DNA of 64,000 bases from Macrostomum lignano (taxonomy: Eukaryota): positions 62,001-126,000 of the forward strand of contig NIVC01000190.1 in NCBI GenBank assembly GCA_002269645.1. Reading direction: 5' to 3'. Below the pieces are notes generated by a model, which saw only the letters and a list, made by a program, of their open reading frames with translations, searched no databases and was not told the DNA's origin. Below are positions 1,102-64,000 of the stretch, one piece after another. Every line of letters begins with the position of its first letter. Positions within the stretch are counted from its first letter, which is position 1. The translations under genes and the position numbers were made by a program.

Positions 1102-1104
1102 TAG

Positions 1105-1145
<41 letters not shown>

Positions 1146-5916: not shown

Positions 5917-5985
5917 GACCTTTGTTCATGAAATTGGAATTAGTCAGTCTCTAAAAAATTCTCTTTATAAAAACTTTCATTGAGT

Positions 5986-18860: not shown

Positions 18861-21800
18861 ATGACAACATCAAAGACAGTAAAAGAAGTAGCCTTTGTTT
18901 ACTGGTTAGTAATGGTCGGCTGCTCATCCGCCCTGGACCTGACAGTCGGCGTGATCACGGAGGCCGGAAGCTTGAACAGCTCGCTCATCGACGTCGCCTT
19001 CGCCAGACGGGTCAACTACAACTGGAGAGTGCTGCAGGGCCACACACTCTCATATGTGCATGTCAATGTGAGCTCGTGCAGCTCACACCAGGCTGTCAGG
19101 ACTGGTGAGTTGAAGCATTTGCTACACGACTCAATCGCTGCTCTGCTCAACCTGCTCAATCAATGCACACAATTGAAGCATGAATTGCACGAATGCAAGT
19201 GTGAGTGCGAGCTGTGAAACTGTGCATGTGTCTGTGTGTCTCGCTCCGCAGTGTGCTCGGAGAGCGGCCTGTCATGTCTGATTGGCGTCGGCAGCTGCTC
19301 TCTGCTGGATGAAGTGAGCTCACTGAGCAAGTCTCTGCAGCTGCCGCTGATCGCCCTGCCGACTGGACTGTGCGACTCTGCTCGGCTGAGCAAAGGTAAC
19401 AGAGATGGATGTCTGGTGTCTTTTTACCATTTCTCTAGATGTCTGGTTTTGAAGTAAAAATCACGCGGAATTGCAGACATGACAATCGTGGGCAGCCACA
19501 GCTCAGAAAACATCGTCGCTGCAGCTGCCTCCATTGTTACCTCGGATTCCATAATTAGCAGTGTGGCAGTTTTCTACGATGGTCTGCAAAGTGAGTGCTG
19601 TGAATAAAGTAAAATACGACGTTCGCATTTTCGTTGTATAATCAGACATCATTTTTATCTAAATACACACTTGTGCACGTGATTGTACTCCCACGATGAT
19701 TCAAGTCTGCATTTGGTCACTGCAGGCACAACAGTGCTGCAGAACCTGCAGTCCAGTCTCTCCTCTGCCGGTGTGAGCAGTCTCACATTCCGAGTGGACG
19801 ACACTGTCAACGCTTCTGTTACTCCTGACCTGGTGCACCACCTCAAGCGGCTGGTCAAGAAGAAAGTGTTCAAGCTGCTGCTGTTCGCCTCTCCTCGCAA
19901 TGCTCTCAGTGTGCTCAGGCTCGCCAGGGAAGCTGCAGTGATGCAGCAGAACTACTTCTGGCTCGTGCTCGACACCGGACTGTCCAAGGCCGATGTGCTC
20001 AGCGTGACGCCGGCGAACGCGAACGTCGCTCTGCTGAGAGGCAGCGTGTTCACTGAGTGCACAGCAGCAGTGATGGATGTGTTTCCTCAGTGCCAGACGG
20101 ACTGGCTTCGGGTGAGCGTTTCATGTGTGCTGCTTGATGGCTGCAGGGATTCATCATGCAGCTCCGCACGTGTGCAATGCATGCCACTGTCGCACTCGAT
20201 CTCGCACTCGATCGTCGCATTCGCATTCGACAGACTCTGGACGCTCGCTTCGTAGACGCCGTAGAAGCCATGGCCAAGGCGCTCAACGACTCGCTGCTGG
20301 ATCCGGGATTCTCTCCCGGCAACGCCTCGTGTGCGCCACTGCGCCACTGGACATCGGGCTCGACTGTGCTCAACAGACTCATGAGTGTGAGTGAGCTCAC
20401 TAGCTAGCAAGCATTGACAAGCATTATTAGTTTCGAGCTGGTCTCTCCCCAATCCCTACTCGATGTGCAGATCAGTGACTATGACACTCAGCGAGGCCTG
20501 ATCTCGTTCAACAGCTCGACCAGACACTTCAGCTCGCAACGAGTCGAAGTGGTCGCGTCCTACAATGAGCTGTGGTCGTCTCCGGTCTCGATGTTGAGGT
20601 CGGCTCAGTTCGATGCATCGAGCGGAGCTTTGAGCAAGCTGTTCCGCTACAAAGGAGTCAGCTTGGCATTCCCCAACACCTTCATGGGGTTCAAGAACCA
20701 GACCATCATTGTCTGCTCTCCCGAGGTGTGTGCCTTTACTTCATGAAAAATTTTTTTAGGAACGTAAAATCGTACTTACGTTTTCACCAATAACCTACAA
20801 TAACATACAGAGCGCTCCAATGACTGTATTTGTCGAAAAGTTTCCTAACAAGACAGTAATAATCAGCGGAATGACTTTGAGCATCCTTGAATACTTCTCA
20901 ACGCAGTTAGACTTTCGGTATGGTGATATAATTCTTACATTCGTATTTTTCTTGTTTTTATAAGTGTATGTACTAATTTTATTATGACGAAACGTTGAAG
21001 ATTTTTAACGAAAGATTCGACAGACGGAAACTGGGGCTCGCCTGAAGTCAACTCAACCTACTTTAACGGATGCGTTGGCGAGTTGCAGCGAGGGGTGAGT
21101 AGGTGACCGAAGTTTTTTATGACCTTAATCGATAAATTTCACATGATTTTTTATTGCTACAAACGTCTGCAGCAGTTTCGTAATTTCTTCACAGAGGCCA
21201 GATCTCATATGTTGTTGTTGTTGTTAAACGGGGGTGGGAAGCTACGGGGCTACCCGCGGATCAGCCCTTGGAGGGGCTCTACCGCAAGAGGGCACTGTCC
21301 AGGGGCACAGATAAAACTGTGTACCCGAGATACCCGCTCGGAGTCCGAGTCACCAATTTAGTTGGGCCCCAGCTTAAGCTAGGGAAAGAGCGAGGGACTT
21401 CAAGCCTACGGTACAAGACACCGCCAACCCAACAGTGGAATCAGGGACGGTGCTAGGACCGAGTCCACCCAGGCTACCCCCCAGCAGACAGGTCCTCGGG
21501 AGTGCGCGAAAAACAGAATTGGATTATTACTGAAAAGCCGTCCAAGAGCGGGAAACCCAGAAGTCTTGGAAAGGGCTAACTATTGGAGTGAGTCTGGAAG
21601 GCTTGTTTCCGAGGGGGAGACTCCAGGCGGACATAGCTACACCTCTATTGCTACAACCCCAAGGGCATCGCCTATCCAGCTCATTATTGGGGGCCAGGCC
21701 AAGGGGGGGAGGGGCACAAGGAGCAAGAGGAAACCGGACTCAGCCGGTTTTCCCCGATTCGGGACGAACTTCCTTCCCAGGACTCCAATCCACTGTCAGA

Positions 21801-24369
21801 GATGAGAGCCAAGACACTAAAGCAGGGAGACAACCAGAGGAGCCAGCAGATGGACCAAGGACAGAGCAGGATGGACCGGGCAGGTAGGGCAGAGCTCAAA
21901 ACTCCAAGATTGGAAAGCGACCACCGGAATTTCGGCCAGATCTCATATACAACGTAGGACGCTTACAAGATTTGTGTGTCGTCTTGAGCGCATATCGCTA
22001 TTAACAGTAGTTTTGCCACTGTTTACGAATGCAATAGTACTTTCCCCCCAATGACCAAGAGTATGCAACGCCCCTGACTCTCGTGACAGAGTGCCCAGGT
22101 TTGATTCCTTGCTCGGCCACATTAATTTGAGGCTCGTCCAAAAGAAAACTGGCCTGGTGCTTGGGGCGATTCTTGCCCAGCACATGGGGGTAATACCTTG
22201 AGGAGTAGAGTATGTCGTATCTGTGTGCACGTGCGTGCTCAAGTGTCAGCAAATGGGCTTGACTGCATGGCCGTCTGACGGACATTGTCGCCTTGATTGA
22301 AGTTGTCCAAAGCCTTCCGCCATAGACTAAATAAAAGATAATGTACAGCGCACTTCAATTGGAACGATTTACAGGAAGTTTCAGTCGCTGCCGGTCCGTT
22401 TACCATAACCGCAGCGCGTGACGAGGTCATTGACTTCTCCGTTCCTCTGTTTGAAGAATCGAACGCTATTTTATTGCCGAGGCCGGCTCCAGAGTCTAAA
22501 CTATGGAGAGTGTTCTCACCTTTCACTATGAGCGTCTGGCTTTCTATTGTTGCAGCTCTGTTTGTCACCACCTTTGCCACTTGGGTCCTGGCCTATTTTT
22601 CACCGTTTACAGCCTACAACTTGAATCTTGAGTTTGCCATAGCTGATGAGGTCTGGCTTCAAGAGTACCTGTGGAGTGCGATAGGCAGCTTTCTGCAACA
22701 GGGCCAAGACTTCTATCCGTTTGCAATGTCGTCTAGAACAGCCATGGCGTTCTGGTGGCTGCTTTCCGTGATTATTTGTGGCGCATTCAACGGTGAGACG
22801 GCTTGATCAGTTATTACAAAAAGACTTTGCAGTAGTCAAACACAAATCGTTAGCTATAGCTTTACAGAGCTAGTTTGAACCACAAACTCACCAATAGGCA
22901 CTTTTATGCCCAAAGCGATGGCGTGTGCAGAGTTTTAAATGTAGGGGGAGCGTAACACAAAGGGGCCAATATTTAGTGTCTTGGCCGGTAGGCGCCCCTG
23001 TCTCTTGGTGGGCGCCCCTACCACAACGATGTACCAAGTACGACTGACACGGAAATTTGAAGTGACACCAGCGTCCATTTGATCTGCGACAGCTTTAAAA
23101 GGAAAAAGAAAAAAATGTTTCCGTTGGAGAGCAGCCTCATTGAAAATTCTCTACTAGACAAAAGTGCAAAATAAAAAATGATCGTCTACCAAAACTTCAA
23201 TTCTGTTTTCAATCAGAACAAAATGTACTAAAAGAAAACGAAAAACGAACCGCAATGAATCTTCTTCGCGTCATTTCAGGCGATCTGACGGCCCACCTGA
23301 CGGTGACTGTGACGCACTATCCCATCAAGACCCTGGACGATTTGACAGGACAAACAGAAATCAGACCCTACGTAATTGCTGGTACAAGTCTGCACACTCT
23401 GCTTTTGAACGCGGAATCTGGTGTCTACAAGAAAATCACCGAGAGTATGGTTGAATTGGGGCCTTACGATGACTGTCCGACAGATGTGAGCGACTCGATC
23501 ATTGTATTGCATTGTTTGACGCTTGTATCGGTGTAGCAGGAACAGGGGGCACGGTAAAGTAATTCCGAGCACAATATAAACGAGATCTCACTTTCATGAG
23601 CTCAAATTGACTTGAATTCCAGCTTACTGTCGTCAATTACTCAGCCATCGTAAATAACGTACGAAGCAGTTTGTCATACTAATCTGGTAATTTTCGAACC
23701 CATTTTTAGCCGCCAAATCCTAACCAGGCCTGCCTCACGGACTACACTTACCTGCTAAACATAGCCAGAAAGAATTGTACTCAATTTTACCTGGCCGAAG
23801 AATTGTTTTTAACTGCGCCAATTGCTTTGATGCTACCGGATGACGCGTTTTATGCGGAACTGTTCAACTTCCAGTGAGTTTCAATCTTCCTTAAAAAGTA
23901 GAGAGTCGGGAGCATAAACTCACTTTTTACTCCTTGCTGTTTCGATTCCTATTAGAAAATGGTTACGCGCAGAGAAAGGCGCAAATATTTTAGGACAAAA
24001 AATCCACTCAGTTGTATCGAGGAAAACATTGACATTCGCTAGATGAACCTAGGACTCTGCATAGGTGATCCTACTGTTCAGTAGTACCAAATAAAGAACA
24101 TGTTCCAAATTCTTTTTAACTCTGTTTGCAGCATGCAGAAACTGCACGAAACTGGCCAACTGCAGCGCTGGTTCCAGCTCTACTGGTCCAGCGACTCAGT
24201 CTGCTCTGTTGGCAGCTCTGCCGAAACCGACGCTATAAGCCTGGAGAGCGCTGGTGGGTGCTTCATAGCGACTCTCTGCTTCTACGGCCTGGGACTGCTG
24301 ATTCTATTGTTAGAGCTTGTCTGGACTAAGCTGGCTAAGAGGCAGCCGCTGGATTGCTTCTTCTATTGA
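18861..24369 (+). CDS. Ionotropic glutamate receptor / IR-family subunit, paralog 1 (ATD+LBD+TMD, 840 aa, 12 exons)
   Basis: Exons 18861-19104, 19252-19395, 19477-19590, 19726-20111, 20234-20386, 20471-20725, 20811-20917, 21001-21094, 22375-22792, 23280-23485, 23710-23873, 24132-24369; all GT-AG and phase-compatible, total 2523 nt. Motifs: signal peptide; DGNWG..FNGCVGELQRG; GPFTITAARDEVIDFSVP (S1 Arg); M1; WSAIGSFLQQG pore loop; M3 WWLLSVIICGAFNGDLTAHLTV; M4 GGCFIATL. Confidence 0.92.
21211..21933 (-). mobile_element. 723-bp retroposon insertion (SINE or 5'-truncated LINE) with (CAA)n tail and 15-bp TSD, in iGluR-1 intron 8
   Basis: GGCCAGATCTCATAT is duplicated at 21196-21210 and 21934-21948. 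A (GTT)5 run at the left end reads as a CAA tail on the minus strand. GC-rich body with no clear RT motif. Confidence 0.82.
22043..22340 (+). mobile_element. Possible degenerate tRNA-derived SINE
   Basis: B-box-like GGTTTGATTCC at 22098-22108, preceded by a weak A-box-like TGACCAAGAG and tRNA-like spacing; about 220-bp body ending in an A-rich stretch. No TSD found. Confidence 0.35.
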
Positions 24370-26072
24370 TTAAAATTTCAAATATTAGGCTACGTTTGGA
24401 CAACAAATCCAACATTAGATAATAACTTTGCACTGCGTAGTTAGAACGTGCTTTAACATCAACATTTTCAGTTTACTGGAAGCAGCTTCTATTATGCTTA
24501 TTAAATTTGCACTTGAACAGGGTGTTGATTGCATATTTCATGATATCATTAGAATTATTTTGACTATTAAGTGCACCACGAAACAGAAAAAATTTTTCTA
24601 CATAACGGTTGAGAAGTTGAAATCTAAGGGAAGTTGCATTCTGGATTTTATCATATCTTCGAATAATATTGCTAGAACTTCCATTGTGTCTCAATCTTCT
24701 CGAGTCAGTAGGTAAAATACTTCATCCTCAACAGTAAGATTTTTTAATTTGAAACTTTGTCAGAGATTTCTTGCTCAAATTCATCACGGGAAGCACTATA
24801 AAAGTACCAACTATAGTCGAACAGAAGTTAACTTCACTTTCTACTACCCCCCCCCCCCAAATAACGTGCAAGATGCTGCGCATTTTACCATCATCGGAAG
24901 GCCAAATATCGGTCAAGTGTTTACTGTCCCGAAATTCTAGTTTTAAGATCGAAGGATATGTAAAGCCTCATCCACCCACTAAGTCAGTGTCAGGGATACG
25001 AGCTACATCTTCTCTGACCAGCTTCACAGTTTTGTGGACGCTTTGCGAAAGCATGCTTGCCATGTTTTTCTCTTAGTCCATGTATAATCCTACTGTCTGA
25101 ATCTGATAGCAGGTTGAAAAAATTATCAATAATCATTGAATTATAAGTCACTGACGGAAAAAATTACCTCAGAAGAACTTCTAGAGAACCATAACATGGA
25201 CAACTAGAGTAGAAGGACGCTACACTCGGCTTTCGTGGAAATCGGGCTGGAGGCCAAATTTTCGCGTAAATACACTAGTGTGACGTTGTCAGTTTAAGGT
25301 GGTCCCGAAAAGGGCCGTTGGACTCCTGTTTCCCCATAGTCATTCAACCCTTCAGTTTCACCGTTTCAACTAAACTTTTCCATTTGTTTATTGCGACGTT
25401 TACTTGTAGTAGTGCCCAACGATTTTGTGGCAATTTCTAATTCACTGTATATTTTGCTATCCTCTCTCTCGACCGTATAAAATTGGCACGATCGATAATT
25501 TTAAGTTCTCTCGCCAGCCAATGAAAACCACTCGTGCTTCGCGCTACCCCCCTCTGCGCTCCTTTATTAAACCCCCCGCCTGGCGGCGGCACTCCTCACT
25601 CCCGTCCTTATCTGTGCTTCTCTCTTCCTCCCGGCCTGTCCTCGGCCTTGTTTTCCTTCTCTCTGTCTGGGCCAGCCTGTTTACACTGCCTGCCACTGTC
25701 TGCCACGGCTAACGCCAATCTCACCACTACGCATCTGCCACTGTTGTACTCATCGCCGTTACTCACCACGTTGCATCGTCTTGCATCACTCGCCTACCAC
25801 TCAACTACAATCTCTAACTCACCTTCAAGTCAAAACCATTGTTGCAGCCGCCAGTGCCCCAAAGCGCAATAAGTTCTATATTGATATTAACCGCATCGAA
25901 TATTGATCTCAACAATAATAACCAACTACGGCCAGTTTCCGGCCTTGTATGCCAAGTGCTCCGCTACACAAATCCGCTATCAAGACTTGACTCGATTCAT
26001 TTGGGACTAAAACGGCCCTTTTAAGGGTCACGGACAACATCAAAGGCCGAACTGCAGGGCTGTAGCCGGGAA

Positions 26073-27803
26073 ATGCGTGCACTCTGGGCTCAATTCAAGG
26101 ACCTTGAAGTAGTCGAGGGCCTATTGTACTTAGCCAAATCTTCCAAAGCCAAGACTGCCAGCAGGCGCCTGGTGGTGCCTGAGACCGCAGACGTCAGTCA
26201 TCTGGTCCTTCAGTATCATGGCCAGTTGAACCATTGCGGTATCACCAAGACGATGGCCGCCCTGAAGGCGCGCTTCGTTATCTCCGACTTAGATACTATA
26301 GTCAAGGGGGTCCTGGCCGAATGCACCGTTTGCGCTAAGACTAAGAAGTCAAAGCGTAAGCTCAAGGCCCCTATGCAACCAGAACTGTCCGGCTACCCGA
26401 ACCAGGTTGTCCACGTGGACCACGCAGGCCCATTCGAAGAGTGTGAGGGGTACAAGTACCTGCTGGTTATGATTGACCGGTTCACCGGGTTTGTCGAAGT
26501 AGTTCCTGTTCCCGACGTCAGCGCAGAGACCACTGCCACAACCATCCTGACTGAATGGGTTGCCAGGTATGGGGTGATGGAGCAGTTGGTGTCTGATAAC
26601 GGAACTGCCTTCATCAATAGTACCATGATAGAATTAACTAGGCTCCTACAGATTGACATGGGTCGGATCACAGCCCGTCGCCCTCAGGCTAACGGTAAAG
26701 CTGAGAGGATGATCCAGACGGTGAAAGCCCAGATTAGAGCCATCTGTCTTGAGAGACAATGCGACTGGACCCTTGCCAGCCGCCTGGCCGCCATGTCAAT
26801 CCGTGCCACAGTCGCCGAATCCACCGGATTTACTCCAGCCAAACTTTTCTTCGGGCGTGAGTTCGAACTGCCGCTCGACCTCTGTCACAATCCACCGCCA
26901 AATGAGCACTACCAGCCGGAAAAGTACGCCCACCAGTTGCACCGCACGCTAGTCGAAACCTCTGCCCTAGCCCGCCGCACTAGGGGTAAGGCCCAGGAAA
27001 GGCAGAAAAGGTATTACGACCGCCGCGCCCTCCGCGCTGAGTTCCACGAGGGAGAATTAGTCTGGGTCTTGAACCCGAATCACAAGGGCATAGAACCCGC
27101 TGTGTGGTTGGGGCCATACCGAGTAGTACAGCGCTGCTCCGAGCGGACTTACCGTTTAGTCCCCGAGTATGGTCTCCTAAACCCAGCAGATCGGGTGCCA
27201 AATCCGCGCCATAACATTTACAACATTGACCGTCTCAAACCGTGTATCAGACAGCCCACTTACCAAGACGTAGTTGACCGGTATGGTGAGGCCACCCATG
27301 CCAGGTCTCCAGCACCTAGTGTGAACCCGCCAAACGGACCCACGAGCGAGCTTAGCCTCGTCACCATTCCCCAGCCTCCCTCTGCCCGGCCAGAGAGCCC
27401 ACGCAGAACGCCAGGGCCAAATCCACCACCGCCAGCTTCAGGCGCCTTTGAGGAGGGGGCGGGAGCTGCTGCGGGAGAAGGCCAACCATTCGCCGAAGCT
27501 GGCGATGCTGTAGCCATTGAGGGACAGCCACAGCCAGACACTGACACTGACAGCACAGACACTGACACCAGCCATAGCCAAGACAGCTCAGAATCGCTGT
27601 ACACGGCCTCCTTGGGGGACCCCTCCTCCGAGCAAATAGAACCACCTGAGATTGCTGCGAATCCAGTCGCTGCGCAAGCAGCTGAACCACCAGCCCCGGC
27701 TGACGTACCCAGATCCAGGTACGGACGCCCCATCCGCCCGCCTGTCAGGTACCGGACCTGTCAGGTGTCCGACCTGCTCCAGCAGTGGGGAAGCAGACAC
27801 TAG
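26073..27803 (+). CDS. Gypsy integrase ORF (576 aa from the first ATG; remnant of pol)
   Basis: HHCC zinc domain (YHGQLNHCG...ECTVC), DDE core (VHVDHAGP, LVSDNGTAF, NGKAERM), SH3-like WLGPYRV and a Pro/acidic tail; uninterrupted. Confidence 0.93.
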   Translation: MRALWAQFKDLEVVEGLLYLAKSSKAKTASRRLVVPETADVSHLVLQYHGQLNHCGITKTMAALKARFVISDLDTIVKGVLAECTVCAKTKKSKRKLKAPMQPELSGYPNQVVHVDHAGPFEECEGYKYLLVMIDRFTGFVEVVPVPDVSAETTATTILTEWVARYGVMEQLVSDNGTAFINSTMIELTRLLQIDMGRITARRPQANGKAERMIQTVKAQIRAICLERQCDWTLASRLAAMSIRATVAESTGFTPAKLFFGREFELPLDLCHNPPPNEHYQPEKYAHQLHRTLVETSALARRTRGKAQERQKRYYDRRALRAEFHEGELVWVLNPNHKGIEPAVWLGPYRVVQRCSERTYRLVPEYGLLNPADRVPNPRHNIYNIDRLKPCIRQPTYQDVVDRYGEATHARSPAPSVNPPNGPTSELSLVTIPQPPSARPESPRRTPGPNPPPPASGAFEEGAGAAAGEGQPFAEAGDAVAIEGQPQPDTDTDSTDTDTSHSQDSSESLYTASLGDPSSEQIEPPEIAANPVAAQAAEPPAPADVPRSRYGRPIRPPVRYRTCQVSDLLQQWGSRH

Positions 27804-27815
27804 CCGCCAGTTTTT

Positions 27816-27960
27816 CACGCCCCGGGCAAGGCGTAAAACTACCTCCTGTGGCACCTGCCGGCCACAGGTCACTGCGGCACCTGTAGACCGCAAGCTCACG
27901 CCCCGGGCAAGGCGTAAAACTACCTCCTGTGGCACCTGCCGGCCACAGGTCACTGCGGCA
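27816..27960 (+). repeat. Two identical 64-bp direct repeats (81-bp period) after the integrase stop
   Basis: Copies at 27816-27879 and 27897-27960. Confidence 0.93.
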
Positions 27961-28714
27961 TTTGCCAGCCACAGACCACAAAACACAAGCCACAAGCCAA
28001 ACTAGTTAATTCAAAAGTAAACTAACTTAAAATTAATTCATAAAGCACTTTATGGTCAAAATATAATTATGACATGAATATTATAAATATAAAAGTTGTC
28101 AAAAATATTCTGTAGTAGTTCTCTGCCTGCATCGGCGTTGCCATAGTCTATAAGGTACACAAGGGCGCGCATGCCCCTGTAAGCCTAATATGACGACAAT
28201 ATGAATAATATATATAAATAGTGATGGCATGAATAGTATAAACATTATAGCAATGGCAAAAATAATTAAAATAATTGATAGCTTAGAATAATCCTATTGC
28301 ACCCGTTCGGTGTTGCCGAAGTCGATGAAATGTATAAGTGCGTCATCTCTGACGTTAATACCTCAAAACCATGTGATGTGCAATATACGGTTGGTAATTA
28401 AGCATAACTACTGGCGACGAATAAAACTCATAAATAACTCAAAAAGAAAATAAAAACTGAAAAAAAGCCATTGAAAACTCGGAAAAAATGCATATAGGAA
28501 TATAGCTAGCTCAGTTCGCTACTCAGCCTATTGACGAGTGCAGCGTAACGCTGCGCAACTGGCTGATCAGGTCAGCGTCGTTTACTTCAAAAATCAGCTG
28601 CAGTTTATCATTAAATTTAGCAAATTTCGTGGGTGTCCGAATAATCATAGGTATATATATCTTGTGTGGGGTAAAAGTAAGCACTATGCACATACACACA
28701 CACCGCACGCACGC

Positions 28715-29035
28715 TCTCTCTGCCTTTGGCGCGTAGCGCCATCCTCTGCCTTGGCGCGTTGCGCCGTTCCTGCCTGGCGCGTAGCGCCATCCTCTGCCTT
28801 GGCGCGTGGCGCCGTTCTCTGCCTTGGCGCGTGGCGCCGTTCTCTGCCTGGCGCGCTGCGCCGTTCCCGCCTGGCGCGTGGCGCCGTTCTCTGCCGTGGC
28901 GCGTGGCGCCGTTTCCTGCCTTGGCGCGCTGCGCCGTTCTTTGCCTTGGCGCGCTGCGCCGTCTCCGCCTTGGGCGCTCCTGCGCCGGTTTCCTTCCGCC
29001 TTGGCGCGCCGCGCCGTGTCCCGCCGCCCTTGACG
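28715..29035. repeat. GC-rich degenerate tandem array (TGGCGCGTGGCGCCGTTCTCTGCCT-like) inside the Gypsy 3' region
   Basis: Recurrent GGCGCG/GCGCCG units; generates overlapping low-complexity ORFs on both strands. Confidence 0.85.
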
Positions 29036-32000
29036 CTTGTCGTCGTTGCCCGCAGTTGTCCGGACTGTGTCTCTGTTTCGTGCCTCTGCTCTGCATCCTT
29101 TGCCTCATCCATCTGTCATCCTTGTTCTGTGTTTTGCCTCACCCATCGTATCACTTCTGCGCGTCCTTTGTCGTTTTGTGTTCGCGCGCGCCGCGCGCTC
29201 CGTCGTGCACCACTTTCCGTAACCACTGTCATATTTTTGTTCTGTTTTTGTAACACCACCATGTTGTATTGCTCGTGCTCACCGCGTTCTACTGCCCTGT
29301 AATATTCTGCTCCCGTAATAGTCTGTAGCCTTTGGAACTTTGTAATTTTGTCCGGTAATCATATACTCCTTCATACTACTCAAGCTCCCTGTAATTCGCT
29401 CTGCTATAATTTCATACGCTGCGGTCACGTTGTGTTTTTCTTGCCGTCACCCCGCGTGTTGGTTTTCTTTTTGCGCGACCCTATCCTTTTTCGGAAGGGA
29501 GGCGGGTGTGACGTTGTCAGTTTAAGGTGGTCCCGAAAAGGGCCGTTGGACTCCTGTTTCCCCATAGTCATTCAACCCTTCAGTTTCACCGTTTCAACTA
29601 AACTTTTCCATTTGTTTATTGCGACGTTTACTTGTAGTAGTGCCCAACGATTTTGTGGCAATTTCTAATTCACTGTATATTTTGCTATCCTCTCTCTCGA
29701 CCGTAAAAAATTGGCACGATCGATAATTTTAAGTTCTCTCGCCAGCCAATGAAAACCACTCGTGCTTCGCGCTACCCCCCTCTGCGCTCCTTTATTAAAC
29801 CCCCCGCCTGGCGGCGGCACTCCTCACTCCCGTCCTTATCTGTGCTTCTCTCTTCCTCCCGGCCTGTCCTCGGCCTTGTTTTCCTTCTCTCTGTCTGGGC
29901 CAGCCTGTTTACACTGCCTGCCACTGTCTGCCACGGCTAACGCCAATCTCACCACTACGCATCTGCCACTGTTGTGCTCATCGCCGTTACTCACCACGTT
30001 GCATCGTCTTGCATCACTAGCCTACCACTCAACTACAATCTCTAACTCACCTTCAAGTCAAAACCATTGTTGCAGCCGCCAGTGCCCCAAAGCGCAATAA
30101 GTTCTATATTGATATTAACCGCATCGAATATTGATCTCAACAATAATAACCAACTACGGCCAGTTTCCGGCCTTGTATGCCAAGTGCTCCGCTACACAAA
30201 TCCGCTATCAAGACTTGACTCGATTCATTTGGGACTAAAACGGCCCTTTTAAGGGTCACGGACAACATCAAATAACGTGACACTAGCGAGATAGAAGAAT
30301 ATATTATTTTTCATGCGAAATAGGCAGCTAAATTTGATTCCAAGAAGCAGTGAAGTTCTTATTTTGATATAAGTTGAAAGAGTTATTACTTTGTTGAATT
30401 TTATATGGCTTTCATCGCGAAAGTGTAGCATTCTATTTTTTCATTTACATTATAACTATAGGCCTAATTATAAGGTATACTCTACTCTAGTAGGCCTGTG
30501 GCCTATCTAGTAGTATAGTATTCCCTACTATTATTAATAGGCTCTGCATGTCATTGTCTGCAGGACAATGACCAAGCCAGTCTATACATCCTATCTGTAG
30601 CTAGTAGATCTTAAATCTCATGCCTATAGCCTATGATCAATATAGCTACTTAGTATATTACAAGAGTTGCAATCTAGAGTGTTATGGATATTCATTCATT
30701 CAAGCATACAAACCCAACCTTAGAGATTTTGTATATTTAGATAGGGTAGCTTTAATTTTTGTTTACTTTGATTTGAAATGATTGTTTTATAATAGAAAAC
30801 TACCCACTGGTTCACACGACCTCGAAACGACATCGAATCAAGCAGTATACCTCGATTTGACTATATTCTGGTTTTTCCAACAATTTGTTTATATAAACCA
30901 TCCCCGTGGTGTCGAATGTATTAAAAAACATAGATTTTTTTAAAATTAAAATGATAAAGTGTGACGTAATGACATCGTATCCATGCCGTAAAGTAGGACC
31001 TCGTTTGTACGATAATTAACTTCGATAAGAAGTTGATAGTTCAAATTTTTGACAACAAAAAACATGTATTAAAATGAAAGTACCACTGTTAATTCAAAGA
31101 TTTTTATAATCATTTTTTACCAGTTATGTTTTAGCATTAACGAACAATAAAGAGTATTTTTTTCAATTGTTATAGTACGTTTATTAAATATGGACAGACT
31201 AGTCTATCTGCGGTTTTAAATTATTTTCCAGACCTACGACGGCCCTCTATACACGTGCGTGCGGACGTGTCAGTATAGAGTATAGTCTACAAATGATTAT
31301 CTTTGCTGCGCTAGAATTGTTATTGAAAGATAAAGTTAAAAAGTAATATACACTGCGTTTCAAATAAGCTTGTCTAATATAGTTCATAATAAACTTTCAT
31401 TCTTTATTTTTCATTTTTTTTAAAATATTGAAAAAAATGAATGTTTCAAAAACATTCATTTTTGAATTCATTGCTTATATTCAAATTCATTTATATTATA
31501 GTTATACTTAATTTTATGTTCATAATTTGAGTAAGATACTGTGTCTAACTCTATATTTTAATAAAAGTTTAATTTCCTCTTACTGGAGACTCCAAGCCTA
31601 GTAGATTCTGAAAGCATGGGCAGCAGGCAGTGGAGCTTGTGACACCGGGGGCACATACCCACCTCCCCTAGAAAATAAGTCCATATGGAAATTTTAGTGC
31701 TTTTTCTTATTTTAGCCTTTAATTAGCAGCTTATAAAGGTACATGTGGCCCACTTTCTTTGTGCCCAATGCCCCCCTTAAATATTAGGCTCCACTGCCCC
31801 TGTCTGAATGTTAAAAAATTCAAAGTTGTGTAATATAAATTTTAATTTTTGTCAAGATTAATAAATATACTGCTTATTTAAACTTCTATTTTTAGTGAGT
31901 GAACATTTACTTTATTGCTTAACATAGTTTTTTAAAAGAATTTTCATAGAGCAAAACAAGTTTGTTTATGTAAAATATATATTAAATGAAAGTAGTGCAT

Positions 32001-32257
32001 TCAAGTATTTTTCAATTCCACATAGCTGGCCTATATAGACAAGTTTTGGCCTACAATTCGGTTTTTATATTTTATTATATGACACATTCTATGAATGTTT
32101 TATGTTTACTATACAAATTATCTTTTATTTTAATTTTATTTAGACATCATAATATCAATCATATATTTCATGTATATGATATTAACTAGTATTTTTTATA
32201 TCTATGAATAACTTGTAGCATCCAAGTGTTTTAGTTATTAGGCCTAGTAGAAATAAG

Positions 32258-33276: not shown

Positions 33277-34296
33277 AAAATAAGAAATAAAGGCCTAGCT
33301 AAAATGTGTTATACAATTCAATGACAATGAGTTGATCTATTTTAAGATGTGCATAGTTACTTATCCCATTTATCTAATTAATTTTAATAAAATTTTAACA
33401 GAGGCAGAAGGCTTTTTATTTCAATGGATAGAATGGCAGCAAAGAGTTTATGCTTCTTTGTGGGTATATTTATATTTACACAAACTGCGCAAGATTAAGG
33501 GGCCTAGAGAGATTTGAAAAAAGGTGGCATGGCATAATAAGCTATGCTAACCCCCCAGCTTAGTGAGCTGGCTAGCCTGGTGCATAACCAGTTTTACAAC
33601 ATGCCAATTTTAGTGAGCAACAAAGACTAGGCAAAGCCTCTATATGGAATCAAGATAATAGAATAAGATAAGATAATAGAAAGTTAAAACCCATGCTGCC
33701 ATTGTCAATAACCTGAATACAAAAAATGCTTTAGTTTTATAACACAATATATTGACCTAAATATTTTAATGAGAAAGTTTTAAATAATAATTTATTGTAA
33801 GATATATGACAATAATATAATAATACCTTAAAAACCAGGTTGTTTCATTTCAATGGCCATGGCATAATTTCAACTCATATTAAACATGATTACATGAAAT
33901 TGATTGTTAATACACATTATTTGAGCCTGATGTGAAAAAGTGAGATCCCCAAAATGCCAAAACAAGCTGAAATTTAATTCATTGAATTCAACTATGCTGT
34001 TTAGCTTGCAATATTTTTCCTTTATCACTTGGGTATTATAAAAAGCAGACATATAGTTTAACAAATATTTAATGTTTTAAACAAAAACCTTTTTTGTTCT
34101 ATTTAGCTATCTAAAATTGGAATAAGGTGTAAAAAATAAGCTTTTGAGCTTTTATTAGAACGAATATTGGTAAGATAATCTTAATAAAAATCTAGCTAAG
34201 AGAATCTTAGTACTCTTGGAAAATCATTTACTTAAATAATTTTAGTATAAAATTTTGTCATACCCTCAAAACAATCATTTTTTTAACTTTTCAGAA

Positions 34297-40388: not shown

Positions 40389-42299
40389 TTACTTGATGCA
40401 AGGAATGACCAGATAGTCTCCGCCAAAGGGAATTAGAATGGCCTTCTTAGAAGGTTGCAAGTTGGATACAAATGTCTTTGAATGCTTATAGTAGCCTATG
40501 CCAATTGATTTTGATGGATATGGATAGGAATAAAGGCTTCTATCAAATGTGAGAACCTGGCCTGAAATAAGACCATCATTTAAATTGGTGACAATGACAA
40601 CCTTTCCATCAACAATAGCACAGTTATTAGGACTCTTATTAGTAAAACCAATGTCACCCAACTTGTCATTAGAATATAAAAATCTCACATTCAACAACTG
40701 GTTGACAGATTGGGCAAAAACATGATTGGTACAACGAATTCTCTTCTTGATCAATTGCAAGTAGTTTTCAAAAGGGAAAGCTGAAAACGTGTCAAGTGGG
40801 CCATACATTTGCACAAACTCAGGAAGGTGCAACAGAGCATGCCAATTATAAGAAACTACACTGTTGTAATATAGGCTTGGTGCCTCAGCAACAAACTTTT
40901 TCAAACAAGCCTCAGCAGCATCAAAATAAATTTCACAGTACTCAGGTGAATTAAGGACTGAAATTGACCAATGCAATAATAGATAATGATTAAAGTAGAC
41001 CTTTGGCAAGGTATTCTTAAAAAGGAACGGACCAAAGTACAAAAGACATTGGCGGAATTCCGTTGCTTTAAAGTATTCAATGTCAGCAAAAGTGCGAAGC
41101 CGTCTTTGAAAATCTGAAGGAACAAATTCCTTAATATACATTATTTTTCTATTTATTTCCTCTTTTAATTGGGATGACAACTTGCAAGCAAGTCGAATGT
41201 GCTTTGCTCCAAGGAAGTAAAATTTGAGCAACTTCTTTACAACCCCTAAGTAGACAATATGCATTGGGTCGGGTACAAAATTGGAATACATTGGAACAAT
41301 CCTGGCTAGTGGAGAAATACCAAGTTGGTTATTTTCACGCCCTTGTTCATAATCTTGATTTGTTCGAGCCTCTGCAATGGTATTAGAAAAACAAATTCTG
41401 TCACCTGTGTAATTTCCTACTTGACGACACCAACTACAGCCAAGATAACTGGAATGACCTTTCAAACATTGAATAAAGTTTCTAGCAGGTGTGTCACAGA
41501 TAAAGACAATTGACTTAATAAAAATTCTTTTCATATTATAGTCAAAACCATTCTGTAGACCTGCAATTTCAGAACAAAACCTTTCTAAGAAGACATGTAG
41601 GTCAGGCTTTCCAATGCCACAAAAAAGGCCAAATGGCACAGGTCTAAAACAATTATTTACTAGCATCAATATAGGCCAAAGATTGATTCTAGATGACTTG
41701 AATAAAGGAAGACCATCAACATTTACCCTTAAGGAAACAAAGAAGTTTGTAATTCCAGATGGAATTGTAAGGATTTTGGAATCAAGTAAAAATTTCAAAT
41801 TGTCCACAATGGAGAGAAAGGCAACATGACCATTATTGACATTGAACCTCGTGATCTCTGTGCTTGGACACTGCCTCTTAAGCATGTAGACAGAAGTGGG
41901 TATGTCAGTGAAGAAACGAGCCAAAAGCCGAAGTAGGTAATTCATGGCAGCACTAGTAATATTGAATGTTATGTAAAACAATAGTAACTCTTGCACCAAA
42001 GTAAGTGGCGGAGGTCTATTATAGCCAAGAGAGTCATCTTGTTCTTCAACTTCTTCATCCATTTCTTCCTCAAAAAGAGCATGCATTTGGCTATCAAAGT
42101 CCATTGGCATTGGACCCACTGCATCAAAGAATGTCTCTTCAGGCTCAGCATTGCTCTTTGTATCTTCATTTTGTCCCATCACATTTTCTAGATCTAGCCT
42201 AGCCTCAATATTTGTAGCCCCAATCGTCGGAAGCTCTTGTAGTATTTCTTGCATTTCCCTGGCTACCTGTCTATTTGATGCACGACTTGGCAAAGCCAT
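40389..42299 (-). CDS. CACTA/EnSpm-type DDE transposase of element B (636 aa)
   Basis: Motifs NVDGLPLFKSSRINLWPIL, ICDTPARNFI..HSSYLGCSWC, VPDPMHIVYLGV, FKATEFR, YNWHALLH, SAFPFENYL; collinear with the element A transposase. Confidence 0.92.
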   Translation of the reverse strand: MALPSRASNRQVAREMQEILQELPTIGATNIEARLDLENVMGQNEDTKSNAEPEETFFDAVGPMPMDFDSQMHALFEEEMDEEVEEQDDSLGYNRPPPLTLVQELLLFYITFNITSAAMNYLLRLLARFFTDIPTSVYMLKRQCPSTEITRFNVNNGHVAFLSIVDNLKFLLDSKILTIPSGITNFFVSLRVNVDGLPLFKSSRINLWPILMLVNNCFRPVPFGLFCGIGKPDLHVFLERFCSEIAGLQNGFDYNMKRIFIKSIVFICDTPARNFIQCLKGHSSYLGCSWCRQVGNYTGDRICFSNTIAEARTNQDYEQGRENNQLGISPLARIVPMYSNFVPDPMHIVYLGVVKKLLKFYFLGAKHIRLACKLSSQLKEEINRKIMYIKEFVPSDFQRRLRTFADIEYFKATEFRQCLLYFGPFLFKNTLPKVYFNHYLLLHWSISVLNSPEYCEIYFDAAEACLKKFVAEAPSLYYNSVVSYNWHALLHLPEFVQMYGPLDTFSAFPFENYLQLIKKRIRCTNHVFAQSVNQLLNVRFLYSNDKLGDIGFTNKSPNNCAIVDGKVVIVTNLNDGLISGQVLTFDRSLYSYPYPSKSIGIGYYKHSKTFVSNLQPSKKAILIPFGGDYLVIPCIK

Positions 42300-48639: not shown

Positions 48640-50860
48640 GCACTCAATTTAGACTTATCCTCGCCTCGTTGAAAAGGTTCGCCAAATCGCTACGCCCGTA
48701 AAGCAAGCAAGAGGTATCGCAGTTTCTGGGTCTTGTCAACTTTTTCGGCCGACTAATCCCAAATTTCACCGCTAAAACACGCGCGTTAAACAATCTTCGC
48801 AAGGCTAGCACAGCGTTTGTCTGGGATTCCAGTTGCTCTGAGGAATTTGAAAATCTGAAGCGTGAGATTAGCTCCGCTCCTGTCATAAGGCCGTACAGTT
48901 TGGAGAAACCAGTCACTTTGACTACCGATGCCTCTAAAGGTGCCGTGGCTGGCGTACTCACGCAGGAAGGACATCCCATCATCTATGTTTCGAGAACGTT
49001 ATCAAAAGCTGAGGAAAACTACTCAAACATTGAGCGCGAGGCGCTTGCAGTTTTCTGGGCAATCAATCGCCTAAGACAATACCTCCTAGGAAGAAATTTT
49101 ACTATCCAGACAGATCATCAGCCGCTACTTCGCCTCTTTGGTGGCGAGGTGCCCACGCACACCTCGGCTAGAATTGGTCGCTGGGCGCTTGCGCTTATGC
49201 AGTATGACTTCCAAATTCAATATGTTAGTGGTCCTCAAATTCCCCATGCCGACGCACTATCCCGCCTGCGTTTCACTAAAGCGTCGCCCGATCCAAAGGA
49301 AATTTCTGATGCGATCAACTGCGTGGTATTCGAAACCTCAACCATTGACTCTAAGCGTATACTGGCGGAGATGGATTCTGACCCTCTTGTTCAGAAGATA
49401 ATTCAGCGCGTGCGCTCTGGAGACTGGTCGAAGTGCTCTCAGGCGGAATCCCCATACAAAAAAGTCGCGGATCGCCTCACTATGGAAACTGGCCTGCTAT
49501 TCAAGCAGAGACGCATCTTTATTCCGCCTCGCCTACGTCTCGAAGCCTTTAACACTATTCACGACACGCACTTGGGCGCGCAAGCCTCTTACAATCTACT
49601 AGCCTCATCGTGTTGGTGGCCTGGGATGCGGCTTGATGTTGAACAATTTGTGCGTCGATGTGCTGGATGCAATCAGCTACGACCGCGACTGCTCAAAGAA
49701 AGAGACACTTGGCCAGCATCTACTTTTCCTTTCCAGCGGATCCACATCGATTGGGCGTATGTAAAGGACATTGGAAATATCCTAATTGTCGTCGATACGT
49801 TTTCAGGATGGATAGAAGCTTTTCCGTCGCGTGACAGATCAGGAGATAGCGTTGTTCGGTCCCTAATTACCGTATTTTCTCGATTTGGTGTACCCGAACT
49901 ACTTGTGTCGGACAACGCACCTGAGTTTACTGGTGATCCCCTATCCTCATTCCTACGCGCCAATTGGAGTCACCTCCGTACTACCCTACCCTCAGGCAAA
50001 TGGATCGGCGGAGCGGGCAGTTCGTACTGTCAAGACGGCGTTGAGAGCGTGGACCGAGCGCGTCACCCACATGGAGTTCCTCCGCTTCCTTCAGAAGATA
50101 CTTTTCCACCATCGCAATTCGTCTATGTCCCGAGGTAAATGCCCGGCGGAATTGGTCTTTGGCAGACGATTGCGCGCGATTGACGCTTTCGTTCAGGGGA
50201 GACGGTCCACTACAAACCACATGAATCGTCGTCAGGCACCCCCGCGACCTTTGTGATGACTGCAGGCAGGAACACGGCGTGGGTTCTCGCTGACAGTCGG
50301 TTGCAGTTAGCTAGCACTAATCAGCTGGCGCCTCAAAACCAGCCTTCAGACGCCAATGACGATGATGAAGATGCTGTTCCCACATCCAATGCAGACGTGC
50401 CGCCCGATGACCAACAGCAGGCCCAACTGAGACGAAGTTTGCGAGACCGTCGACCTCCCGAGAGATTCACCCCATAGCATTCTCATGAGTTGCAGTGAAC
50501 AATAACTACCTTGCCTGTTAACAATGAACTGAATAAGATATGTTTTCCCACTCTAAAAGTTACTCATGAAATTTTATACTTTATTGATATAACCCATACA
50601 TATAGGTCATGGTTGTAAGCAGCTTCTGAAGAAGGGGCATGTTGTGCATTGAGAGAATGCCTCCTATCAACGCGCGCATTGATGTACTACTATTAATTCT
50701 CTTACTGACTCTCTCGTTCCCTTCAAGTTTCGCTTTTTGTCTATGTCCTATCTCTCTACAGGAATTCGTATATTTTAGAGCACCGCTCTCTTGTTTGTTT
50801 CCTAAAAGCATGTTTGAGACTTAAGGCAATAGAAAACAATAAAGTGCATCAGCATTAACG
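48640..50860 (+). mobile_element. 5'-truncated, frameshifted Gypsy element (RT thumb-RNase H-integrase, PPT, probable 3' LTR)
   Basis: FLGLVNFFGRLIPNF (connection); TTDAS, EREALAV, TDHQPL, ADALSR (RNase H); HDTHLG..CAGC, HIDWA, LVSDNAPEF. Frameshift near 49960-49990 before NGSAERAV. PPT GAAGAAGGGG at 50628-50637, then TGTTGTG.. from 50640 with AATAAA near 50840. No 5' LTR found. Confidence 0.85.
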
Positions 50861-52608: not shown

Positions 52609-52617
52609 TATATAAAA
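52609..52617 (+). promoter_or_regulatory. Candidate TATA box of iGluR paralog 2
   Basis: TATATAAAA about 70 bp upstream of ATG 52683, with ATTGG (inverted CCAAT) at 52591-52595. Confidence 0.35.
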
Positions 52618-52682
52618 AGACCTTGCATGTGAATCCAAATACAATCAACTCTACGAGCTACTAATCAACTAACTCCAAAGTA

Positions 52683-55600
52683 ATGGCAGTTGCACGCGTG
52701 TTAGCAATAGTCACTGCCTTCTCAGTTTATCTAGGCAGCTCATCCGCCCTGGACCTGAGAGTTGGCGTGATCACGGAGGCCGGAAACTTGAACAGCTCGC
52801 TCATCGACGTCGCCTTCGCCAGACGGGTCAACTACAACTGGAGAGTGCTGCAGGGCCACACACTCTCATATGTGCATGTCAATGTGAGCTCGTGCAGCTC
52901 ACACCAGGCTGTCAGGACTGGTGAGTTGAAGCATTTGCTACGCGACTCAATCGCTGCTCTGCTCAACCTGCTCGATCAATGCACACAATTGAAGCATGAA
53001 TTGCACGAATGCAAGTGTGAGTGCGAGCTGTGAGACTGTGCATGCGTCTGTGTGTCTCGCTCCGCAGTGTGCTCGGAGAGCGGCCTGTCAGGTCTGATTG
53101 GCGTCGGCAGCTGCTCTCTGCTGGATGAAGTGAGCTCACTGAGCAAGTCTCTGCAGCTGCCGCTGATCGCCCTGCCGACTGAAATGTGCGACTCTGCTCG
53201 GCTGAGCAAAGGTATGCTGCAGCGTGTCTTCTAAAGTTCTTTTGACAATTTTATTCAGTATTAATAAGCTGGCCAATCTAAACTTGCCTAAAAATAGCAG
53301 GATACACTGTGGTAGCCAGTCACAGCTCTCACGACATCATGCGCGCAGCGGCAAGCATATTCAAAGACGAATCGGAACTCAACAAAGTCGCCATGCTTTA
53401 CGATAAAAAACAAGGTTTGAATGTTTTGCAAAATCTTTATTTTATGTACTTTTTCCGGTATTCGGGTCAGGTTTCATACGGTAGCACTTTTTCTAGCTAT
53501 AAATATTAACATAATACGAACCATAAAATTGATTCAGATTCACTGATGCTGCAGAACCTGCAGTCCAGTCTCTCCTCTGCCGGTGTGAGCAGTCTCACAT
53601 TCCGAGTGGACGACTCTGTCAACGCTTCTGTTACTCCTGACCTGGTGCACCACCTCAAGCGGCTGGTCAAGAAGAAAGTGTTCAAGCTGCTGCTGCTCGC
53701 CTCTCCTCGCAATGCTCTCAGTGTGCTCAGGCTCGCCAGGGAAGCTGCAGTGATGCAGCAGAACTACTTCTGGCTCGTGCTCGACACCGGACTGTCCAAG
53801 GCCGATGTGCTCAGCGTGACGCCGGCGAACGCGAACGTCGCTCTGCTGAGAGGCAGCGTGTTCACCGAGTGCACAGCAGCAGTGATGGATGTGTTTCCTC
53901 AGTGCCAGACGGACTGGCTTCGGGTGAGCGTTTCATGTGTGCTGCTTGATGGCTGCAGGGATTCATCATGCAGCTCCGCACGTGTGCAATGCATGCCTCT
54001 GTCGCACTCGATCTCGCACTCGATCGTCGCATTCGACAGACTCTGGACGCTCGCTTCGTAGACGCCGTAGAAGCCATGGCCAAGGCGCTCAACGACTCGC
54101 TGCTGGATCCGGGATTCTCTCCCGGCAACGCCTCGTGTGCGCCACTGCGCCACTGGACATCGGGCTCGGCTGTGCTCAACAGACTCATGAGTGTGAGTGA
54201 GCTCACTAGCTGGCAAGCATTGACAAGCATTATTAGTTTCGAGCTGGTCTCTCCCCAATCCCTACTCAATGTGCAGATCAGCGACTTTGACACTCAGCGA
54301 GGCCTGATCTCGTTCAACAGCTCGACCAGACACTTCAGCTCGCAACGAGTCGAAGTAGTCGCGTCCTACAATGAGCTGTGGTCGTCTCCGGTCTCGATGC
54401 TGAGGTCGGCTCAGTTCGATGCATCGAGCGGAGCTCTGAGCAAGCTGTTCCACTACAAGGGAGTCAGCTTGGCATTCCCGAACACCTTCATGGGATTCAA
54501 GAACCAGACCTTGGTTATGTGTACCCCTAGAGTTAGTTACTTTGACAAATCTCTTTTGTTGTTCTACATGTCTTTTGGAAATGCATTTCTCTCAACCGCA
54601 GCTTTCTCTCAAAATTATCTCAACATTCAGATCAAATTAATGAGTTTTCTTCTAACTTTTCAGACCTCTCCGATGACAGACTTTGTTGCTGAGTTCCCAA
54701 ACAAAACTGTGATTATTCGAGGAATGACTCGAGATGTGCTGGACATTTTGGCTCAGAAAATGGATTTTAGGTAACCTTTTTATAGTCGTCCTTAATTACC
54801 TGCCTTATTAAAGTATAAGTTGGATGGGAGTTTTACCTGAAAATGCAGATACATCACTAAGGCACCTGACGACGGTAACTGGGGTGCGCCCCAGGCAGGC
54901 AAACCCTACTTCTCAGGATGTGTCGGAGAGCTTCAGCGTGGAGTGCGTGGGCTGTCATGTTTTCTCAAGATTTTTTTTGGTGAAGAATGATATCAGTTAT
55001 TTATACTTGCTTATATCTGATTTCCCCGCGTCCAGATCTCACACCTGGGAGCTGGCCCCTTCACCAAGACTTCAATTCGCGATTCCGTTATCGACTTCTC
55101 AACGCCGCTGTTCGACCAATCCACCGCAGTCATGGTGCCGAAACCGCCACCAGACACAAAGATGTGGAACATTTTTACTCCGTTGAGTCCGTCTGTGTGG
55201 TACCTCCTGCTAGGCACTTTGGCATGCGCCTCAGTTGTCATGTGGGTCCTTGCTTACTACTCTCCATTCTCGGCTTACAACTTGGGCCTTGAGTACGCAG
55301 TTTCTGATGAGATCTGGCTGCATGAGTACATTTGGAGCGCTATCGGGAGCTTCCTGCAGCAGGGCCAGGACTTCTACCCGTTTGCGATGTCGCCAAGGAC
55401 TGTTATGGCATTTTGGTGGATGTTTACCTTGATCATATTTGGAGCTTTTACCGGTGCGTCTGCTAGTGCTTTTATGAGCTAATGTATAATTAATTTCTAG
55501 GGTAATAAGCTACTACCATTCCTAATTATCATTACAGGTGACTTGACTGCTCACCTGACTGTGACTGTCACGGACTATCCGATCAAAACCCTGACAGACC

Positions 55601-58688: not shown

Positions 58689-64000
<5,312 letters not shown>

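Follow-up and report, generated by a model that had tools for sequence, protein, structure and literature searches.

Two neighbouring genes of the ionotropic glutamate receptor (iGluR) type, here called gene A and gene B, lie in a stretch of 64,000 nucleotides (nt) of Macrostomum lignano DNA (assembly GCA_002269645.1, contig NIVC01000190.1, positions 62,001 to 126,000 of the forward strand; hereafter the window). They raise the question of how two genes can be almost identical over the DNA of the amino-terminal domain (ATD), introns included, and be strongly diverged in the ligand-binding domain (LBD) and in the channel-forming transmembrane domain (TMD). Chronic, family-wide and regionally confined non-allelic gene conversion would be the best explanation of the ATD homogeneity, and a probability of about 0.85 was assigned to it.

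Both genes were modelled manually by reading frames, and comprise the following exons.

18861-24369, + strand: gene A, a 12-exon iGluR-type gene of 840 amino acids (aa), hand-built model
Gene A exons 1-6, + strand: 18861-19104, 19252-19395, 19477-19590, 19726-20111, 20234-20386, 20471-20725
Gene A exons 7-12, + strand: 20811-20917, 21001-21094, 22375-22792, 23280-23485, 23710-23873, 24132-24369
52683-56961, + strand: gene B, a paralogous 12-exon iGluR-type gene of 842 aa, hand-built model
Gene B exons 1-6, + strand: 52683-52920, 53068-53211, 53301-53414, 53538-53923, 54040-54192, 54277-54531
Gene B exons 7-12, + strand: 54664-54770, 54849-54942, 55036-55453, 55538-55743, 55839-56002, 56712-56961

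The genes were arranged in the same (tandem) orientation, 28 kb apart. Introns were GT-AG throughout and the frames were intact in both. Exons 2 to 11 had equal lengths in A and B (144, 114, 386, 153, 255, 107, 94, 418, 206 and 164 nt), in agreement with an earlier sequence-only reading of this DNA, in which all ten internal exon lengths were said to be common to both genes. Among the M. lignano proteins in UniRef, P0011 and P0016 matched the N- and C-terminal parts of gene A exactly and P0004 matched the C-terminal part of gene B exactly. Two introns differed conspicuously in length. Intron 8 held 1280 nt with 52% GC in gene A (21095-22374) versus 93 nt in gene B, likely reflecting an insertion in gene A. 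Intron 11 held 709 nt in gene B versus 258 nt in gene A, because an 18-nt tandem repeat, TAGGCTACGCTAGACCAC, inflates the gene B copy (56163-56661, about 28 copies, 90% matches).

The two loci were compared with blastn, which returned two homogenised tracts separated by an island. Tract 1 comprised 481 nt with 11 mismatches (97.7% identity). Tract 2 comprised 970 nt with 16 mismatches and one 6-bp gap (97.7%). The resulting segments were as follows.

18918-19398, + strand: tract 1, gene A copy, from the signal-peptide c-region across intron 1, ending 3 nt (donor GTA) past exon 2
52734-53214, + strand: tract 1, gene B copy (blastn)
19399-19734, + strand: unconverted island, gene A, from intron 2 across exon 3 and intron 3 to 9 nt into exon 4
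53215-53546, + strand: unconverted island, gene B
19735-20704, + strand: tract 2, gene A copy, exon 4 (from 9 nt in), introns 4 and 5 included, stopping 21 nt short of the exon 6 end
53547-54510, + strand: tract 2, gene B copy (blastn)
20705-24369, + strand: anciently diverged part, gene A, from the exon 6 tail to exon 12, with the first LBD strand, S1, M1-M3, S2 and M4
54511-56961, + strand: anciently diverged part, gene B

Exons 2, 4 and 5 were 97-99% identical between A and B at the nucleotide level. Exon 6 reached only 93%, because its final 21 nt fall outside tract 2, which stops after the codons for FKNQT. Introns 1, 4 and 5 were 94-98% identical, with the 6-bp indel of intron 4 (20215-20220) amounting to a single CATTCG unit. 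Nucleotide identity fell to 56-66% in the exons beyond the tracts (exon 3 and exons 7-12), and the introns there were unalignable and often very unequal in length. Exon 3, with introns 2 and 3 unalignable on either side, showed 56% nucleotide and 49% amino-acid identity and a proportion of synonymous differences (pS) of 0.74. The part after tract 2 had 55-59% amino-acid identity, with a pS of about 0.76 and a non-synonymous divergence (dN) of about 0.33. The tract positions of the sequence-only reading were thereby reproduced almost to the base (tract 1 starts at 18918, not 18922), as was its single 6-bp intronic indel, and the exon 3 peptides it quoted were correct. Its contrast between a homogenised ATD and diverged ligand-binding and channel parts, and its list of diverged segments (signal peptide, exon 3, introns 2-3, exon 7 onward), were borne out by the segment identities.

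Exonic differences numbered 16 in 908 nt within the tracts versus 457 in 1133 nt outside (Fisher p = 1e-114). In the concatenated exons 2-11, the longest identical run was 186 nt, versus a maximum of 62 in 10,000 shuffles. Synonymous divergence (dS, Nei-Gojobori) in the tracts was 0.012 and 0.044. Outside, pS was 0.73-0.90 for exons 3-11, 0.62 for exon 12 and 0.76 for the pooled exons 7-12, at or near saturation. The tract substitutions comprised 11 non-synonymous, 9 synonymous and 7 intronic changes, and tract exons (1.8%) and tract introns (2.0%) differed equally. Since exons, introns and silent sites were equally similar, the identity of the tracts is due to recency and not to constraint. 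With internal tracts of 97.7% identity, introns included, in otherwise saturated genes, the earlier proposal of a mosaic produced by ectopic conversion gained support, no other explanation being found to fit. The saturated synonymous sites, the unalignable introns and the LBD/TMD identity of 55-64% mark A and B as old paralogs. Apart from the two tracts, self-comparison of the whole window gave no long-range match between the loci; the last exon produced a weak hit, and the remaining signals came from an unrelated pair of long terminal repeats (LTRs) and from tandem arrays. Searches of the window with tblastn and self-blastn found no further gene copies.

At all four tract edges, identity dropped from about 98% to random within 1-3 nt; once aligned, the genes did not show the uniform divergence that would have spoken against a mosaic. 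The inner edges lay 3 nt into intron 2 and 9 nt into exon 4 after intron 3. The outer edges lay inside exons, one in exon 1 within the signal-peptide c-region and the other in exon 6, where the tract stops after FKNQT with 21 nt left to the donor. In the alignment, FKNQT/IIV (the slash marks the edge) corresponded to NRS/LIV of GluK2, which we take to be where S1 of the LBD begins. With outer edges at the signal-peptide c-region and after FKNQT, the homogenised DNA corresponds to the mature ATD plus linker. This match of the outer limits to the mature ATD, and not to exon edges, is the sole hint that selection, in addition to heterology, shapes the limits. Differences were denser towards the outer edges (4 of the 11 in tract 1 fell in its first 53 nt, and 7 of the 16 substitutions in tract 2 in its last 154 nt), as expected if tract end-points vary. 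The divergence of the two tracts was indistinguishable (2.3% versus 1.65%, p = 0.41). Edge inspection and self-comparison of the window detected no repeats or transposable-element hallmarks at the tract edges. Transposon-mediated exon capture was rejected because such hallmarks were missing at the edges, which lie in frame inside exons.

A homology search extended the observation beyond the window. The homogenised module, at 91-100% protein identity, was common to at least seven genes of M. lignano. The genes were told apart by their signal peptides, which were bona fide but unrelated. In addition to A and B, the following were distinguished.

Gene C: P0001, P0007 and P0010
Gene D: P0008
Gene E: P0012
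Gene F: P0002a and P0009
Gene G: P0003, P0013 and P0014

Among the seven genes, the signal peptides had 0-30% protein identity, module residues 24-130 had 91-97% and module residues 172-424 had 97-100%. The part after FKNQT was 55-64% identical (A, B, C, G and a fragment of F). From these comparisons, A and B are assigned to a family of iGluR-type subunit genes that is lineage-specific and has at least seven members in M. lignano. The ATD of a more distant paralog, P0005, was only 46% identical and serves as a control for an unconverted ATD. P0002 carried F upstream of E, and P0015 represented a second assembled A-B tandem with the same mosaic, which places the family in several tandem pairs.

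Variation within the module carried signs of repeated exchange. At positions 37 (S/N) and 194 (T/S), all four combinations occurred among the paralogs, a four-gamete violation at the protein level. At position 363 (S/L) there was variation among genes as well as among the copies of gene C; at position 221 (F/L) A differed from B, and two copies of A from each other. The second B copy had A-like or consensus states at 120-121, 340 and 351. Copies of the same gene differed at 10 of 1180 module residues versus 1 of 1125 post-module residues (p = 0.012), an excess expected if variants of paralogs are copied in. Outside the tracts, the GC content at third codon positions (GC3) was 0.559 in A and 0.617 in B, versus 0.751 inside them (p = 9e-9 and 4e-5). 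Converted introns had 51-52% GC versus 32-34% in neighbouring short unconverted introns (p ≤ 4e-6). Raised GC confined to the tracts is consistent with the signature of GC-biased conversion. Altogether, these patterns point to chronic, family-wide and regionally confined exchange, i.e., concerted evolution. The sequence-only reading had proposed a recent conversion between twin genes. Conversion was upheld, but tract-confined GC, shared polymorphisms and copy differences make the exchange look chronic and not like a single recent event. The twin framing proved too narrow, since at least seven genes carry the module and direct conversion between A and B is not required.

Exon 3 interrupts the module and was compared across the family. 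Its first half (DMTIVGSHSSENIVAAAAS) was part of the homogenised block in A and C-F, and gene B was the sole family member with a wholly divergent exon 3. What varies across the family is a patch restricted to aa 150-171, to which exon 3 contributes its second half and exon 4 its first three codons. It occurred in a few deeply divergent types, with A close to E, E equal to F, C equal to D, and B alone. Because patch types were common to gene pairs with unrelated signal peptides, the patch must also have been exchanged at times. The earlier statement that exon 3 escapes conversion therefore holds for gene B but not elsewhere, where the first half is homogenised and the patch is shared by gene pairs. 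The same reading had suggested that exon 3 could mark a specificity-determining patch of the ATD. In exon 3, the ratio of non-synonymous to synonymous divergence (dN/dS, omega) between A and B was about 0.16, indicating purifying selection without a sign of diversifying selection. A P0005-like donor for gene B exon 3 was considered for the likeness of GYTVV to GHTVV and dropped, since 8 of 19 matches versus 7 of 19 for gene A were uninformative.

By alignment to GluK2, the patch covers a helix end, a core strand and a turn at the start of the lower lobe. This placement rests on HMMER alignments to GluK2 and GluD1; an AlphaFold model of P0001 from a 5-sequence alignment had a mean predicted local distance difference test score (pLDDT) of 32 and a predicted template-modelling score (pTM) of 0.20. 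The helix directly after the patch presumably corresponds to the one with the lower-lobe interface residues L137 and L144 in GluA2. The lower-lobe dimer interface of AMPA receptors is the variable, affinity-setting part (PMC4576161). In gene G, exon 3 was frameshifted in the models and legible only to DMTIV. All three database copies (P0003, P0013 and P0014) showed the shifted frame (DMTIVAATARKTSSLQPPPSL), and the models stopped prematurely after exon 8. Gene G is either a pseudogene or the product of a recurrent indel error in the source assembly.

The proposed mechanism, homologous-recombination repair limited by heterology, would account for these features as follows. Repeated interlocus gene conversion would keep the DNA of the mature ATD, with its internal introns, near-identical across the family. 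Conversion tracts would extend until the sequences are too diverged to pair, giving sharp and self-maintaining boundaries. At the inner edges, heteroduplex formation or synthesis would halt at the heterologous introns 2 and 3. Regions that had once escaped, namely the signal peptide with the promoter, the LBD/TMD and the island of gene B, would no longer be convertible. Exon 3 of gene B (114 nt), enclosed by two heterologous introns in a 336-bp island, would have been too short to pair and would have drifted. The outcome would be subunits in which one common ATD is joined to different ligand-binding and channel modules.

Several points weigh against this explanation or limit it. dN/dS taken part by part, as the sequence-only reading had proposed, gave an omega of about 0.4 in the module (11 non-synonymous versus 9 synonymous changes) and 0.12-0.26 in the diverged parts, which are under purifying selection. 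The module value gives no direct sign of strong selection on ATD identity, and ascribes the uniformity to conversion and not to strong constraint. The inner edges, at or 9 nt from exon-intron junctions and without a gradient of differences, fit tracts blocked by heterology but are no proof of them. The raised GC content could also derive from a GC-rich donor in a single wave. The family-wide statements rest on protein models from a fragmented annotation, with intron sharing known for A and B only. Finally, the exactly matching protein models may stem from the window's own assembly, which leaves the A-B copy in P0015 as the only independent physical confirmation.

Given that conversion is real, the strongest competing view concerns its meaning. 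Conversion may be chronic but selectively neutral, in which case the ATD block simply never escaped and its boundaries are accidental. This was judged to have an even chance of being correct. It agrees with a module omega no lower than elsewhere, with inner edges at heterologous introns, with an isolated 114-nt exon that is plausibly too short to pair, and with patch types common to gene pairs, so that nothing is strictly protected. On the other hand, both outer limits fall inside exons and match the limits of the mature ATD. The ATD is normally the fastest-evolving part of iGluRs, and given this fast evolution and the P0005 ATD at 46%, escape should be easy over a time that saturates dS.

In studied iGluRs, the ATD drives dimerisation and subunit assembly. 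ATD uniformity could be selected, for example as a common platform for co-assembly or partner binding, although we regard this as a tentative idea that is somewhat more probably wrong than right. In its stronger form, the invariant ATD would be a selected 'constant region' through which any ligand-binding and channel module could co-assemble with any other; this is doubtful. Equally speculative is the corollary that the small hypervariable patch (aa 150-171), located where the lower lobe starts, might supply a few compatibility classes.

Chronic conversion across the family was also weighed against a single recent patchy event, or two simultaneous ones, between A and B alone. The equal divergence of the two tracts (2.3% versus 1.65%, p = 0.41) and the tandem position of the genes 28 kb apart are compatible with such an event. 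However, the module is present in at least five further genes, and the shared polymorphisms and four-gamete violations involve other paralogs. The GC enrichment of tract introns and third codon positions needs many events. In addition, a prior A-B identity of only about 60% with heterologous introns would be far too low to start homologous repair. A one-off exchange was thus considered very unlikely.

An assembly or polishing artefact, in which reads from paralogs were merged into consensus chimeras, was rated as less probable still. In its favour are the repeats and the recent duplication of the M. lignano genome and the many near-identical copies within the family. The tracts are not identical, however, but differ by 27 substitutions and one indel. 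Copy-specific variants recurred in separate models (C90 in P0011 and P0015; H406 and NQTL in P0004 and P0015), and the second assembled A-B tandem (P0015) had the same mosaic. All frames and splice sites were intact in A and B. Moreover, polishing cannot make 60%-identical exons and unalignable introns 98% identical with nucleotide-sharp edges.

An origin without conversion, by extreme purifying selection on ATD DNA or by recent duplication followed by explosive divergence elsewhere, has nothing but the high identity itself in its favour and can be set aside as refuted, since similarity at replacement sites is matched by that of introns and synonymous sites, dS is saturated in adjacent exons and the diverged parts evolve under purifying selection. 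Recent duplication, unequal crossover and a chimeric gene were also rejected, as both tracts are internal, with diverged flanks and unrelated upstream and signal-peptide regions.

Pfam domains were detected in A and B above the curated cut-offs in all cases, with Lig_chan at 85.6 and 86.5 bits, Lig_chan-Glu_bd at 55.2 and 49.1 bits and ANF_receptor at 52.7 and 68.3 bits, respectively. Both proteins had the domain order of the iGluR superfamily, i.e., ATD (ANF_receptor), LBD (Lig_chan-Glu_bd/PBPe) and channel (Lig_chan). Both aligned end to end with GluD1 (6ksp) and GluK2 (5kuf), the closest solved structures, with E about 1e-40. Hydropathy analysis detected M1 (about 545-575) and M4 (about 801-830) in both, and M3 in gene B only. 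The pore loop was FLQQGQ at A605/B603. The M3 motif read GAF(N/T)GDLTAHLTV where SYTANLAAFLTV was expected and was recognisable but altered (SYTANLAAF to FNGDLTAHL).

The reference residues of the pocket are R485 and T480 of GluA2 in S1, and E705 of GluA2 or E738 of GluK2 in S2. In glutamate receptors, E738 of GluK2 is the acidic residue that contacts the alpha-amino group of the ligand. The Thr and Arg of S1 were retained (T509 and R514 in gene A, R512 in gene B). The S2 position equivalent to GluK2 E738, an Asp in GluD1, was N724 in A, G722 in B and an Ala in gene C according to HMMER alignments. Its codon was located as follows.

About 23760, + strand: GluK2 E738-equivalent codon in gene A, exon 11
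About 55890, + strand: GluK2 E738-equivalent codon in gene B

The combination of S1 Arg and Thr with an acidic S2 residue that defines a pocket for glutamate or other amino acids was thus incomplete, the acidic S2 residue being replaced. This replacement by N, G or A makes an alpha-amino-acid ligand doubtful. The paralogs probably bind ligands other than alpha-amino acids, and these probably vary from one paralog to the next. Judged by their sequences, A and B are full-architecture iGluR-type subunits with a variable ligand pocket that resembles that of ionotropic receptors (IRs).

The M. lignano case belongs to a known phenomenon, domain-confined gene conversion, and is close to the regional conversion of protocadherins. 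In clustered protocadherins of teleosts, regional conversion is associated with >99% identical 3' parts of the variable exons, divergent 5' parts and raised GC3 (Yu et al. 2007, PMC1852091, which documents regional conversion with raised GC3 in fugu protocadherins). Conversion of protocadherin genes was also described by Noonan et al. 2004 (PMC353213), as cited in PMC1852091. Both systems are families of surface receptors, neuronal or sensory, with one part >97-99% nucleotide-identical across paralogs and another divergent. In both, synonymous sites are homogenised and GC3 is raised in the converted part, and the process is lineage-specific and repeated. The homogenised region of protocadherins lies in one large exon, in genes of one tight cluster. 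The block in M. lignano, in contrast, comprises six exons and three introns with an internal variable patch, corresponds to a whole folded domain (the ATD) and occurs at several loci (the A-B and F-E tandems).

Domain-restricted concerted evolution is also known from the major histocompatibility complex (MHC) class I/II, KIR/LILR and duplicated globin and opsin genes. As in these cases, some exons were homogenised and others diverse, the boundaries were sharp and stable, and polymorphisms were shared among paralogs. In families of the MHC/KIR type, conversion and selection interact and the specificity-determining exons stay diverse. The M. lignano genes differ in gene family and phylum, in that homogenisation affects the assembly domain of a ligand-gated channel, and in that no diversifying selection was demonstrated on the unconverted part.

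With vertebrate AMPA, kainate and delta receptors, the M. lignano proteins share the ATD-LBD-TMD architecture, the QQG of the pore loop and the S1 residues Thr and Arg. They differ in an identity of only about 22-25%, in N, G or A at the E738 position and in the altered M3 motif. Vertebrate iGluR subunits have subunit-specific ATDs, the opposite of what was found in this family. Lineage-specific tandem expansion, loss of the canonical glutamate-contact residue and variation of ligand contacts among paralogs are shared with variant IRs of protostomes. Divergent IRs typically lack an ATD, whereas the M. lignano genes all have one, and their best solved relatives are delta and kainate receptors. 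A literature search returned no report of gene conversion in the ATDs of iGluRs or IRs, or in iGluRs of M. lignano.

The ATD of iGluRs controls subunit pairing and normally differs between subunits. An ATD held identical while the ligand pocket varies, even in the amino-group residue (N, G or A), amounts to a natural experiment on modular receptor design. If the ATD were a selected constant region, conversion would here play the part taken by shared constant exons in clustered protocadherins or UGT1, and would open a new route to a combinatorial chemoreceptor repertoire. The family also offers an unusually clean case for how conversion boundaries arise, with nucleotide-sharp edges, introns carried along, an internal island and at least seven participants at several loci. 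In practice, the ATD has to be left out of phylogenies, orthology calls and read mapping of this family, which will otherwise mislead, and assemblies here call for validation with long reads.

Mobile elements were found in the interval between the two genes.

25278-30272: LTR retrotransposon remnant, 0.9 kb downstream of gene A

Its direct repeats of 767 bp (25278-26044 and 29506-30272) were 99.6% identical, with 3 differences in 767 positions (0.4%). Besides a GC-rich 25-bp tandem array (28717-28973), the interior held a single open reading frame (ORF) of 576 aa (26073-27803) with integrase zinc-binding and core domains. This young insertion is probably non-autonomous. A comparison of the LTR pair (0.4%) with the tracts (2.3%) places the last homogenisation of A and B roughly six times further back than this insertion, assuming equal neutral rates. 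A Ty3/gypsy-type pol fragment was located 2.5 kb upstream of gene B, as a 412-aa ORF (48900-50138, + strand) with reverse transcriptase-RNaseH, integrase H2C2 and rve domains. Its neighbourhood was joined to the edge of the LTR remnant by a 67-nt inverted match of 87% (25195-25261 versus 48477-48411).

Two intronless ORFs were present between genes A and B, at 34255-36261 (+ strand, 668 aa) and 40389-42299 (- strand, 636 aa). Neither had a Pfam match, and their mutual identity was 36% over 544 aa (E = 6e-120). With a DG..P..KSS....WPIL motif, the sequence may resemble a DNA-transposon transposase. Positions 985-10146 were occupied by a patchwork of satellite arrays with periods of 4, 26, 68/203, 20, 21, 15, 36 and 48 nt. 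The 48-nt array (9092-10096, about 21 copies, 91% matches) contained degenerate CCCTAA/CCTAA telomere-like units. Downstream of gene B, two tetranucleotide microsatellites of great length were detected, (CTAT)n at 59389-59922 with about 134 copies and (TAAC)n at 62970-63479 with about 127 copies.

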